A stretch of DNA of 64,000 nt, taken from assembly GCF_902713615.1 (NCBI RefSeq), contig NC_052150.1, forward strand, positions 222,673,063 through 222,737,062, given 5' to 3'. The stretch comes from Scyliorhinus canicula (lineage: Eukaryota). Positions 25,180-44,369 of the stretch are shown here, piece after piece. Below the pieces are notes generated by a model, which did not search any database, was not told where the DNA came from, and saw only the letters and a list, made by a program, of their open reading frames with translations. How positions within the stretch are numbered: position 1 is the first letter of the stretch; the number at the start of each line of letters is the position of its first letter. Both the position numbers and the translations under genes were made by a program.

Positions 25180-27860
25180 CTCCTCATCATCCTGTTCCCC
25201 TTTACCAGTCACCTCATCACCCAGTTCCCCTTTACCAGTCTCCTCATCACCCTGTTCCCCTTTACCAGTCTCCACATCACCCTGTTCCCCTTTACCAGTC
25301 TCCACATCACCCTGTTCCCCTTTACCAGTCTCCACATCACCCTGTTCCCCTTTACCAGTCACCTCATCATCCTGTTCCCCTTTACCAGTCTCCTCATCAC
25401 CCTGTTCCCCTTTACCAGTCTCCACATCACCCTGTTCCCCTTTACCAGTCTCATCACCCTGTTCCCCTTTACCAGTCACCTCATCACCCTGTTCCCCTTT
25501 ACCAGTCACCTCATCACCCTGTTCCCCTTTACCAGTCACCTCATCACCCAGTTCCCCTTTACCAGTCTCCACATCACCCAGTTCCCCTTTACCAGTCACC
25601 TCATCACCCGGTTCCCCTTTACCAGTCTCCACATCGCCCTGTTCCCCTTTACCAGTCACCTCATCACCCGGTTCCCCTTTACCAGTCTCCACATCACCCT
25701 GTTCCCCTTTACCAGTCACCTCATCACCCTGTTCCCCTTTACCAGTCACCTCATCACCCGGTTCCCCTTTACCAGTCTCCACATCACCCTGTTCCCCTTT
25801 ACCAGTCACCTCATCACCCTGTTCCCCTTTACCAGTCACCTCATCATCCGGTTCCCCTTTACCAGTCTCCACATCACCCGGTTCCCCTTTACCAGTCTCC
25901 ACATCACCCTGTTCCCCTTTACCAGTCTCCACATCACCCTGTTCCCCTTTACCAGTCTCCACATCACCCTGTTCCCCTTTACCAGTCACCTCATCACCCA
26001 GTCACCTCATCACCCAGTTCCCCTTTACCAGTCACCTCATCACCCTGTTCCCCTTTACCAGTCACCTCATCACCCTGTTCCCCTTTACCAGTCTCCACAT
26101 CACCCGGTTCCCCTTTACCAGTCTCCACATCACCCTGTTCCCCTTTACCAGTCTCCACATCACCCAGTTCCCCTTTACCAGTCTCCACATCACCCTGTTC
26201 CCCTTTACCAGTCGCCTCATCACCCAGTTCCCCTTTACCAGTCACATCATCACCCAGTTCCCCTTTACCAGTCACCTCATCACCCAGTTCCCCTTTACCA
26301 ATCACCTCATCACCCAGTTCCCCTTTACTAGTCTCTCATCACCCTGTTTCCCTTTACCAGTCTCCACATCACCCGGTCCCCCTTTACCAGTCTCCACATC
26401 ACCCTGTTCCCCTTTACCAGTCTCCACTTCACCCTGTTCCCCTTTACCAGTCTCCACATCACCCTGTTCCCCTTTACCAGTCTCCACATCACCCTGTTCC
26501 CCATTACCAGTCTCCACATAACCCTGTTCCCCTTTACCAGTCTCCACATCACCCTGTTCCCCTTTACCAGTCTCCACATCACCCTGTTCCCCTTTACCAG
26601 TCTCCACATCACCCAGTTCCCCTTTACCAGTCTCCACATCACCCTGTTCCCCTTTACCAGTCACCTCATCACCCAGTTCCCCTTTACCAGTCACCTCATC
26701 ACCCAGTTCCCCTTTACCAGTCACCTCATCACCCTGTTCCCCTTTACCAGTCACCTCATCACCCTGTTCCCCTTTACCAGTCTCCACATCACCCGGTTCC
26801 CCTTTACCAGTCTCCACATCACCCTGTTCCCCTTTACCAGTCTCCATTTCGCCCTGTTCCCCTTTACCAGTCTCCACATCGCCCTGTTCCCCTTTACCAG
26901 TCTCCACATCACCCTGTTCCCCTTTACCAGTCTCCACATCGCCCTGTTCCCCTTTACCAGTCTCCACATCGCCCTGTTCCCCTTTACCAGTCTCCACATC
27001 ACCCTGTTCCCCTTTACCAGTCTCCACATCACCCAGTTCCCCTTTACTAGTCTCCACATCACCCGGTCCCCCTTTACCAGTCTCCACATCACCCTGTTCC
27101 CCTTTACCAGTCTCCACATCACCCTGTTCCCCTTTACCAGTCTCCACATCACCCTGTTCCCCTTTACCAGTCTCCACATCACCCGGTTCCCCTTTACCAG
27201 TCTCCACATCACCCTGTTCCCCTTTACCAGTCTCCACATCACCCTGTTCCCCTTTACCAGTCTCCACTTCACCCTGTTCCCCTTTACCAGTCTCCACTTC
27301 ACCCTGTTCCCCTTTACCAGTCACCTCATCACCCAGTTCCCCTTTACCAGTCTCCACATCACCCTGTTCCCCTTTACCAGTCTCCACATCACCCGGTTCC
27401 CCTTTACCAGTCTCCACATCACCCAGTCACCTCATCACCCAGTTCCCCTTTACCAGTCACCTCATCACCCTGTTCCCCTTTACCAGTCTCCACATCACCC
27501 TGTTCCCCTTTACCAGTCTCCACATCACCCGGTTCCCCTTTACCAGTCTCCACATCACCCTGTTCCCCTTTACCAGTCTCCACTTCACCCTGTTCCCCTT
27601 TACCAGTCACCTCATCACCCGGTTCCCCTTTACCAGTTTCAACATCACCCTGTTCCCCTTTACGAGTCTCCACATCACCCGGTTCCCCTTTACCAGTCTC
27701 CACATCACCCTGTTCCCCTTTACCAGTTTCAACATCACCCTGTTCCCCTTTACCAGTTTCAACATCACCCTGTTCCCATTTACCAGTCTCCACATCACCC
27801 TGTTCCCATTTACCAGTCTCCACATCACCCTGTTCCCATTTACCAGTCCTCCACATCACC
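25180..27860. repeat. 30-bp minisatellite, roughly 90 copies (2.7 kb)
   Basis: Unit CATCACCCTGTTCCCCTTTACCAGTCTCCA with variant units. Confidence 0.98.
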
Positions 27861-39161: not shown

Positions 39162-39293
39162 CTGCATAGCTGGTGGATTCTGTTCTTTGGCAGTGACCGG
39201 GTTGTTGAGGTGAATGTAATATTGCGTCTCTGCATCATCATACTTGCACTTATCGAACCAGATTTTTTCCTCTGTCAATACGTTAACTGCCAT
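39162..39293 (-). CDS. EEF1D: EEF1D short-isoform start exon ([26 protein letters not shown]...AMQ); exon starts at 39297
   Basis: TTACAG|G ACC ATG G; donor CAG|GTATAT; homologous to [22 protein letters not shown]. Confidence 0.95.
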
Positions 39294-40590
39294 GGTCCTG
39301 TAAGGTGGGAAGATAAATGGGAGGCACAGTAAGACGCTGTTCACAGAAAGAGATGCCACTCGCAACGTTTGCCCAATACACCCCACTAATAACACCACAA
39401 ATCGGGGGATTTGCACTCTGTCCCATTCTAACACAGACTTACTGTTCCTCGACGCAGTGGAACACTGCAGGAATTAAATAATTATAAATGGTGGGGAGAT
39501 GGGAGCAGACACTCGTCCCATAGTGAGGCTTGTAACAATAGCTGACAAGGCCTCCTGTGACCCAACCCTCCCCAAGTACAGGAAAATCCATTTGAATATT
39601 GCTTATTGTCACGAGTAGGCTTCGATGAAGTTACTGTGAAAAGCCCCTAGTCACCACATTCCGGCGTCTGCTCGGGGAGGCTGGTACGGGAATCGAACCG
39701 TGCTGCTGGCCTGCTCGGTCTGCTTTAAAAGCCAGCGATTTAGCCCAGAGTGCTAAACCAGCCCCTATTTGGACCTGGGAGTTACTTTACTTCGGTTCCA
39801 CCATGCCCACTACCCACCCTCCCAACTCAAGCTGATTCTGCAGGAATGGGCACCTCACCATGCATCCCTTTGGGTGCTCCATTAAGATTGGAGCAGTAAG
39901 GACCCACCTCTCCCTTGGCAAAGCAGCAAGCAGGCGCAAAGAACTAAATCACTGTTACCACAAGCAACACTGGGTCATGCAAAATGCAGCTGGTGCACGC
40001 GCTGTGATGATCGATGTTCAAATCCAGTGACACACACAGTCAACTCCCTTAGACTATTCGCAACAGCCTGAAACATCAAATCTAGAAGTCAGAAACATGT
40101 CAACCCACACACACACTGTCCCCTTCACCTCCCCGTCCCCTTCACCTCCCCAACCCCAAACACCAGATTAACTTTCCTTTGCCTCGGCAACTGCACGGAG
40201 CTGCAGCCAACCATTTGATGTCTCCCGGCTGCTCGTCCCTCTTACTCCGACTCACAAATACAATGACAGATGAATGAAAAGATCCTTTCTGTCTCTGAAT
40301 GGCAGGAACAGTTAGCCAGTGATGTTAACAGTACTGCTTGGATTACAGTATCATTACATCGGTTAATGAGACATCAGCATCCATCTATTTATCTGTGGGA
40401 CTCACATAGTAAACGTTCAGAGCAAGATCAACATTTTAAATCGACTGGGAGCGAGATATTTCAGCTGTAGTAGCTAGGTTGTAACTGGCGGGAAAAGGCC
40501 AAGACAGGTTTGTATACTAAGACTAAGAGGTCATGTAAAATTTCCTGTAGCACACATAGTAAGGAGTGTCATAAACAAGATTCAAACAAT

Positions 40591-41917: not shown

Positions 41918-42713
41918 TCCCGAGACACCCATCAAAACCCACTCCATGCGACCAGGGACAGGCAATAAGCCCCACACACCAAGAATGAAAATAAAATCAA
42001 CGTACAGAACTCAAGTGGGAGTAAATGCCTTACAAAGAACCCCCCAAAATGGCACAGAAATAAATCTTGCAGAATCATAAAACTGCCTTCCAGTGGTAAA
42101 CGTACAACAACTATGCTTCACTCTCACTGCCTCCAATTCAATGCGAGCCCAAGAGATCAAACTGTTCTCTTCACAATTAATCATGACAGGCACAATAGGT
42201 GGCCACTGCGCCTCATCCTCACCTTGTAAACACACCGCACTGTCAGGATCCAGGCCAGGAAATGGCTACAGAAAGTGCAGCAGCAGCCAACAACTGGAAC
42301 TCTGGGCGACCTCAGCTCTTCGTACAAAAATAGGAAACTAATTAAGGTGTCAGCTCACCTTCCACAGAGAGCTTTCACTTCACCGCCAATGCACGCAACT
42401 GCTTCTGGATCCCACCACTCACACACACACACACACACACACAACTGGGCGAAGGGGTTCCAGGATTTGACTGGATCATGAAGTGTAGAGCAGGCCTTTT
42501 AACCAAAAGCAGAAGTGACACCACCCGAGTAAAATTTTTAACCTGTTGACTTCATAGAGCAGACCAGCTTCACAAAGGTTTGGTGCACAGCGAGAACAAA
42601 ATCAGATTCAACGCATGCTGAAGGATGGCTCAAAATGAAAAGACACTGCAATGTTGGGAATGCTACAAGAGCACAATAAAAGGCAAGGAGTATTCGATAT
42701 AATTCAAGCCTAC

Positions 42714-43780
42714 TTATCCTGAAGCCTTGGACAGTGAGATGCAGGTCTCTTCAGTGGTGGTGCCCGTGTAGAATCTACCATTGGCTCCCGGGTCTCATTG
42801 GCAGCTCTCTGGGTTCTGGCCAGGTGGTAGCGTAACTCGGCAGCATCGTACTTGGGTTTACTGAACCACACCGGTTCACTGCCCTCATCAACAAGATGGG
42901 CAGCGGCTGCCGCAGGATCCTCACCCACTGCGAGCGACAGACGGGGTTTGGCACTTTGGTGGGCAGGAGGGAGGCTGGCGGCAGGGGTTCTCTGTTGCTT
43001 GATCTGGGGTGGGCCTGTGTGTTGTGTGTCAGTGGCTGAGCCACCATACAATATCTCGTGGTACAGTCGCTCGGCATCATCATACAGTGGCTTTTCCAGC
43101 CAAACCTTGAGTGCCAATGGGCGTTGGCTGGCACTTGGGAACATGCCATTGACCGGCAGGCCGGTGTCTCCGCCAATGGGGAAACCGGGGGTTATGGGGG
43201 TGACAGGGGTAGCACTGATGTAGCCTTCATCCGGAGTGGTCCACAACTTTGGAATAGCAGTGCCCGCGGAAGTTGGGATCGGGAGAGAGTGTGGGACGCA
43301 GCGTGCTTGCGACCGCACGATAAACAGGCTTTCAGCCTCGTCGAAAGTGCTCTTGTTGAGCCAGACACCGTGCACCAGCTGGCAACAAGCGACTAGGGGA
43401 CGTGTCACACAGCCGGGTGTGGCCCCCCTGCTGGGGGGCCTAGTTCCAGCTGCTGGGCGAGCAGCGCCCTTCACCAGCACTGTTCCAGGAGCCACGGGCG
43501 GCCCTGCCATCTCTAGCCGATGTGCACGTACCACCTCTTCGGGTGGGGCACGTGGAGACCGCTTCCGCCGTCTCTTCTTCCCCACCTCTCGCTCCTGTCG
43601 CACCTCCTCCCCGGCCAAAGGCCAGATTCGCTGTGCCAAATCAGTCTCCTGGGCAGCCTGTGCCATGGCGGAGGCAGCTGAGGCCTGCTGGCCCTCATGA
43701 AACAGCCTCTCTGCCTCGTCGAACTTGTATTTGTCCATCCAGATGGTTTCCAGCAGGTAGGGATGCTTCCGGATCCTCAT
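42714..43780 (-). CDS. EEF1D: EEF1D long-isoform (eEF1B-deltaL) cassette exon, 355 codons + 2 nt; exon starts at 43783
   Basis: CTGCAG|ACG ATG after a pyrimidine tract. MRIRKHPYLLETIWMDKYKFDEAERLFHE resembles the mammalian long N-terminus. NLS KKRRRKRSPR. Donor GATAA|GTAGGC is phase 2, matching the next exon's leading G. Confidence 0.9.
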
Positions 43781-44369
43781 CGTCTGCAGCGTCCAGTACA
43801 ACACAGCAGAGGGGAAAGAAACAACACAGTGAACAAGGAAATATACAAACAGAGGCGGCATATTTTAGACAAAGGATTATTTGGCCCAATTTATGCAGTG
43901 TGGTCACTGCAACCAGGAACAATTATCATTTAAAGGCATTTTGAGACAGAAACACTGAATTACACTAAATCGTAGTTTGAAATGTAGTAGGGCTGGGGCC
44001 AGAGGGGAGGGGCAGGTGAAAGAGTGGGGATGGGGTGGGGTCAGGTGCGGGGATGCCAGAGAGGAAGGGGGCAGGTGGCCGGGGGGCTGGCGGCCAGGGG
44101 GGGGGGGGGGGGGGGGGGGGGTGCTGGCAGCCAAACGGGAAGAGGGTGGGGGCAGGCAGCCAGAGGGAAGGGGCCAGGACTACACCCCATCCCCCGTAAC
44201 AACCTATGTTGTTATGTTTGTCAAACAAACAGGCACCATGAGGACGGCAATGCGGGGGCTGATCAGAGCTTCACTGTTTTGCAAGTGAATCCTGTAACAC
44301 TTGCACTTTCTGAAGAGACTCGAGGAGATGGGGCGAGGCGAAAGAAACCGTGTATTAATGGGTACTCAC

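Follow-up and report, generated by a model that had tools for sequence, protein, structure and literature searches.

The long-isoform exon of EEF1D in Scyliorhinus canicula is proposed to encode paralogous copies, arranged as an array, of the short helix by which the canonical protein docks onto EEF1G, carried by a disordered chain and with a nuclear-localisation-type stretch after the first copy. From profile comparisons, the homology of the extra modules with the crystallised, EEF1G-bound helix of EEF1D can be regarded as established, and so can the origin of the array by ancient duplication. That the extra copies still dock GST-fold domains, chiefly that of EEF1G, and thereby make the long isoform multivalent is the functional reading towards which we lean on balance. 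What was known before is the protein, as annotated in RefSeq, with a single docking helix; the tandem array of that element is mentioned in none of the papers searched.

The window, namely the whole 64,000-nucleotide stretch of DNA that was analysed, contains the following two exons of the gene:

42714-43783, minus strand: alternative long-isoform exon of EEF1D (eEF1B-delta-L), identified from the spliced translation and from homologues ranging from hagfish to primates
39162-39297, minus strand: next exon, with the short-isoform start codon and the canonical N-terminus, its junction matched to the RefSeq model

On the minus strand, the long exon is delimited by a cag acceptor at 43786-43784 and by the donor AA/GTAGGC after position 42714, and the ATG of the long isoform is found at 43780-43778 within an open frame spanning 42710-43861. 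The next exon (39297-39162) opens with G-ACC-ATG, which completes a Lys codon and continues with Thr and with the Met of the short-isoform start codon (39293-39291, minus strand), giving a K-T-M junction. The translation of 42714-43783 spliced to 39162-39297 is identical at 401/401 positions to XP_038654513.1, a RefSeq model of 605 aa that is named as an EEF1D (‘delta b’) isoform and bears the EF1_GNE and EF-1_beta_acid domains, both C-terminal; the exon was therefore assigned to eEF1B-delta-L. As in eEF1B-delta-L, it supplies an alternative 5′ coding start with an ATG of its own and splices in frame to the canonical first coding exon. The use of the exon in S. canicula is predicted by this RefSeq model; the exon sequence is also present in 19 sequencing runs from 8 studies, none of them recorded as RNA and at most presumed to be so. 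A Pfam search returned no family for the exon-encoded region, the full-length model showing only the C-terminal EF1_GNE and acidic-region domains, and a feature search of the ESM Atlas gave no usable match.

Two features of the locus may be recorded in passing. A TAG stop codon (42712-42710, minus strand) overlaps the donor (AA/GTAG), and an unspliced transcript would therefore encode an exon-only protein with Leu-Gln-Asp-Lys as its C-terminus; several database models, from rays, birds and a newt, stop exactly at the equivalent point and are annotated as separate ‘uncharacterized’ proteins. Furthermore, a 30-bp minisatellite of approximately 89 copies (90-94% matches) occupies positions 25180-27860, inside the EEF1D intron beside the leucine-zipper exon (approx. 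27.9-28.0 kb), and generates long spurious ORFs on both strands.

The original prediction had placed an array of five W-x-x-K-x-x-(F/Y)-D-x-A-E modules in 42825-43750. All five peptides were found on the minus strand, and a pattern scan with W-x2-K-x2-[FY]-[DE]-x-A-E returned four copies in the long exon and one in the next exon, so that four lie inside those coordinates and the fifth, which is the canonical one, lies outside them. The modules were numbered from M1 to M6 according to their place in the vertebrate alignment:

43709-43741, minus strand: core motif of module M1 (W14-E24), HMM score 40.7 bits, AlphaFold2 (AF2) helix 14-51 with pLDDT 87-89
43508-43540, minus strand: possible relic of the C-terminal half of M2 (aa 81-91), weak and alignment-based, with a short AF2 helix 82-90
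43331-43363, minus strand: core motif of module M3 (W140), HMM score 38.4 bits, AF2 helix 143-158 with pLDDT 76-77
43070-43102, minus strand: core motif of module M4 (W227), HMM score 43.5 bits, conservation 0.75, AF2 helix 230-245 with pLDDT 85
42836-42868, minus strand: core motif of module M5 (W305), HMM score 35.7 bits, AF2 helix 308-329 with pLDDT 84-92
39228-39260, minus strand: core motif of module M6, the canonical EEF1G-docking helix, HMM score 35.3 bits, AF2 helix 372-387 with pLDDT 80-83

With an HMM built on modules from many species each of the five shark copies scored 35-44 bits and no sixth copy was detected in the shark region; similarly, a looser form of the motif pattern, run on the six frames of the 64 kb window, yielded no copies beyond the five. 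Among the 311 linker residues, Ala (44), Pro (40), Arg (27) and Thr (23) are abundant, in agreement with the Pro/Ala/Thr-rich character that had been ascribed to them. At the DNA level, the only repeat within the exon is a 44-nt stretch shared by M1 and M3 with 75% identity. A recent duplication or an assembly artefact was ruled out because this match follows the protein motif. DNA binding by the modules was also considered and judged unlikely, since all but one of the five shark modules are net acidic.

The identity of the repeated element is given by the structure of the canonical protein. In PDB entry 5JPO an EEF1D(1-32) peptide is bound to the GST-like domain of EEF1G, hydrogen/deuterium exchange mass spectrometry mapped the contact to EEF1D residues 11-29, and the canonical EEF1D:EEF1G stoichiometry is 1:1 (PMC9458455). 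The helix, formed by residues 14-28 with a Trp at position 12, adjoins the glutathione site of EEF1G; the E22R and Y26E substitutions in EEF1D and R14E in EEF1G each abolish binding, and oxidised glutathione is reported to evict EEF1D from EEF1G (10.1101/2025.10.13.682107). The N-terminal helix is thus the EEF1G-docking element, as had been supposed. The canonical shark N-terminus (M6) matched the 32-residue EEF1D peptide (5JPO chain E) with E = 1.4e-7. A profile made of 66 non-canonical modules only also retrieved this chain (E = 2.6e-9, 39 bits, residues 11-31), as the sole significant match among solved chains, the next-best having E = 0.075. Of the extra shark copies, M1 is closest to canonical M6, and by itself it aligns to residues 11-30 of 5JPO_E with E = 0.016. 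These values bear out the claim that the extra modules repeat the short-isoform N-terminal helix and, together with the class-specific conservation described below, the further claim that the array in the exon arose by duplication of the docking helix.

A structural model of the long-isoform N-terminal region was calculated with AlphaFold2 on an alignment of 35 sequences. The chain has no global fold (pTM 0.22, mean pLDDT 58.6) and the linkers are predicted with pLDDT below 50; the five helices listed above stand out with pLDDT values of 76-92 and start approximately three residues after the Trp residue, so that the predicted shark modules reproduce the beginning of the helix after Trp that characterizes the canonical docking helix. 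When the modules are drawn on a helical wheel, the conserved positions (0, 3, 6, 7, 9, 10, 13 and 14, taking Trp as 0) fall on one half and the variable positions on the opposite one. The face conserved in all copies comprises V/I at −1, W at 0, K at +3, Y/F at +6, D at +7, A at +9, E at +10 and F/Y at +13. On this model, the Pro/Ala-rich chain is disordered and the modules stand along it as short, amphipathic helical segments. Such an arrangement could also be read as a set of intramolecular decoys or buffers, in which the helices would either mask the nearby nuclear localisation signal or vie with M6 for a single pocket of EEF1G, and so tune binding to EEF1G rather than multiply it. The flexible linkers that tether the helices, the position of the signal between modules and the 1:1 stoichiometry of the canonical complex (PMC9458455) would suit this reading, which is nevertheless quite unlikely in our estimate, as the AF2 model contains no packing between modules (pTM 0.22).

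Two further conserved elements, as well as the modules, emerged from the alignment:

43556-43585, minus strand: vertebrate-conserved basic stretch of nuclear-localisation type (aa 66-75), after M1 and before the place of M2, from the alignment consensus and the conservation profile
43187-43240, minus strand: conserved island outside the modules (aa 181-198), in which T-P repeats come after a near-invariant P-D-E-G, from the conservation profile

The basic residues at aa 66-75 fall, in the alignment, on the nuclear localisation signal region of other vertebrates, such a signal having been described in the human protein (PMC4346937), and a role in nuclear localisation is putative in the shark. 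Within the island, which is kept from shark to primate, P183, D184, E185 and G186 are each at least 90% invariant in the 35-sequence alignment. The T-P repeats that follow resemble proline-directed phosphorylation sites. A conserved stretch containing Cys and His (aa 129-138; 43367-43396, minus strand) directly precedes M3 and is modelled by AF2 as two short strands with low confidence.

The original prediction had also tied its fate to conservation of the repeats above the linker background. The repeats are indeed conserved above it: across the 35 sequences, the five modules of 16 residues have a weighted column conservation of 0.61, as compared with 0.37 for the rest of the region, and random placements of five windows reached the observed module value in only 6 of 20,000 trials. 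M4 is the best conserved copy (0.75), with W, K, D, A and E invariant in 35/35 aligned sequences. Against this background, the notion of a chance pattern, or of a decaying and functionless relic of duplication, is hardly credible. It could draw on the losses seen in single lineages (sharks and rays without M2, teleosts without M1 and in some cases M3); however, it has to face the conservation of the modules well above the linkers, the invariance of the M4 residues across the 35 vertebrate sequences and the outcome of shuffling the 402-aa N-terminal region, in which at least one motif appeared in 3/200,000 trials.

The copies have moreover kept their individuality. At non-motif positions, modules of the same class are 39-57% identical across species, as compared with 21% between classes within one protein, and in 167/171 cases the module most similar to a given one in another species is a member of its own class. 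It follows that the duplications predate the vertebrate radiation and that concerted evolution did not take place. At the level of sequence, each copy is thus shown to be under its own purifying selection. The M3 class, for example, is marked by N at +2, F at +6, F at +13 and a hydrophobic residue at +14. The maintenance of class-specific signatures for more than 400 million years suggests that the copies are not interchangeable, a property that fits diverged partners as well as a fixed place of each copy in one assembly.

Sequence searches identified relatives of the long isoform in sharks (including Chiloscyllium and whale shark), rays (Mobula and Hypanus), sturgeon, paddlefish, many teleosts, a frog (Pseudophryne), a newt (Lissotriton), many birds, platypus, chimpanzee and a hagfish. 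The long isoform was said to be confined to mammals and birds in a 2015 review (PMC4346937), a restriction that is contradicted by these database models, which indicate a much older isoform. Paddlefish, birds and chimpanzee have six modules by count, all the sharks and rays have five, teleosts 3-5, and hagfish three clear ones with a fourth weak one, so that EEF1D orthologues from hagfish to chimpanzee carry 3-6 modules. M4 is always kept; M1 is missing from teleost long isoforms and M3 also from some of them, and in teleost M2 Arg replaces Lys at +3. Sharks and rays are without the W-x2-K-x2-Y half of M2, and in the 35-sequence alignment their M2 columns hold only the segment at aa 81-91. The hagfish carries a copy at the M2 position in the same alignment, which makes a loss of M2 by sharks and rays, and not a gain in bony vertebrates, the most likely history. 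The ancestral array would most likely have consisted of six modules, and the number five that had been given for the array, correct for sharks and rays, does not hold in general. By these counts the long form of S. canicula adds four copies of the docking helix to the canonical one, and that of bony vertebrates five.

Two positions of the helix matter for EEF1G binding according to the published substitutions. The Glu residue at +10, equivalent to E22, is found in 5/5 shark modules and in 96-100% of vertebrate sequences in M3-M6. The position equivalent to Tyr26 (+14) is occupied by Tyr in shark M6 only, with His in M1, M4 and M5 and Ile in M3; across vertebrates, Tyr is found in 80% of M4 and in 89% of M6 copies, M2 has mostly Gln or Arg, and M3 has Val, Ile or Met. 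The replacement of the Tyr26 equivalent in shark M1, M3, M4 and M5 is the first argument against multivalent binding of EEF1G, with the reservation that the role of Tyr26 in the literature is based on the drastic Y26E change only (10.1101/2025.10.13.682107). The second one comes from pull-downs with the human N-terminal region, by which this region is linked with RNF20/40, HSF1 and p-TEFb and not with EEF1G (PMC6451099), and the third one lies in the long-lasting class-specific signatures, which fit copies with diverged partners equally well.

These observations feed the main rival explanation, according to which the homologous copies have been sub-functionalised, each class docking a different partner, so that the isoform would act as a multi-protein hub instead of binding EEF1G multivalently. 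HSF1, p-TEFb, RNF20/40 and other GST-fold proteins (such as VARS1 or the AIMP/MARS/EPRS group) are candidate partners. The class-specific conserved signatures, with no concerted evolution, are in keeping with it, as is the systematic difference between classes at +14, a position important for EEF1G binding in M6. Furthermore, in the human protein the binding of HSF1 and p-TEFb was located to residues 181-367, the part with M3-M5, and that of RNF20/40 to residues 1-367 (PMC6451099). However, the face common to all classes is that containing E22 of the EEF1G interface, and in the published pull-downs the fragments were large and include conserved islands other than the modules. Taken together, sub-functionalisation is a serious possibility, to which we assign a minor share of the probability.

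Under the favoured reading, the extra helices would dock into GST-fold domains, with EEF1G foremost among them. The long isoform of EEF1D trimerises through a leucine zipper. One chain, in the trimer so formed, might thus engage several EEF1G protomers or, alternatively, the long isoform might re-bind EEF1G oligomers with high avidity; either mode would alter the location of EEF1G and its cargo, and the amount of canonical eEF1B complex that is formed. The recruitment of EEF1G into the nucleus is a hypothetical extension of this reading, made in the original prediction. A more elaborate version, which we regard as rather unlikely, is that of a redox-gated multivalent tether: in the resting cell, several GST domains of EEF1G would clamp the five or six helices, hold the long isoform in the cytoplasm and shield its nuclear localisation signal, and oxidised glutathione would release all of them together, sending the isoform to the nucleus and to stress-gene transcription, and EEF1G back to translation. 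If so, the trimeric zipper, with 15-18 helices per trimer, could also drive condensate-like assemblies.

EEF1D-L is a vertebrate-wide brain and testis isoform, and recessive neurodevelopmental disease has been reported with variants of EEF1D, some of which affect residues specific to the long isoform. With the present analysis, its extension of approximately 360 residues, hitherto treated as motif-less, gains a concrete architecture of four to five extra copies of the docking helix, an element that in its canonical form is structurally characterized, mutationally validated and sensitive to glutathione. The presence of the array throughout vertebrates suggests, from sequence data, that the long form may bind several GST-fold partners at once, and the array could connect the reported role of the isoform in transcription and stress with its origin as a translation factor. 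The N-terminal region of the long isoform has been described as being without identified motifs (PMC6451099). In the EEF1D papers searched, a set lying outside the subscription journals, no description of the repeat architecture was found; the 2015 review (PMC4346937), a 2018 knockout paper and a 2026 splicing paper either do not contain the word ‘repeat’ or use it for something unrelated.

Among known systems, multivalent SLiM arrays offer an analogy, in that conserved short helices alternate with low-complexity linkers predicted to be disordered, the multivalency being in the present case a prediction. With the canonical N-terminal helix of EEF1D (residues approx. 11-29, 5JPO_E) the extra modules share the core motif, the predicted helix register and the conserved face with its Glu residue equivalent to E22. 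However, the canonical helix is a single copy at the extreme N-terminus, whereas the long exon adds 4-5 more copies, each with its own conserved flanks, and in most of them, unlike in the canonical helix, the Tyr26 equivalent is replaced. With respect to mammalian eEF1B-delta-L, which is heat-shock-responsive and nuclear, the shark exon is orthologous, with its own ATG and a nuclear-localisation-type stretch after the first module; the chimpanzee model has six modules, whereas the version of sharks and rays is without M2, and in the mammalian protein, as in that of the shark, the array is continued by the canonical N-terminus, the leucine zipper and the GEF domain.
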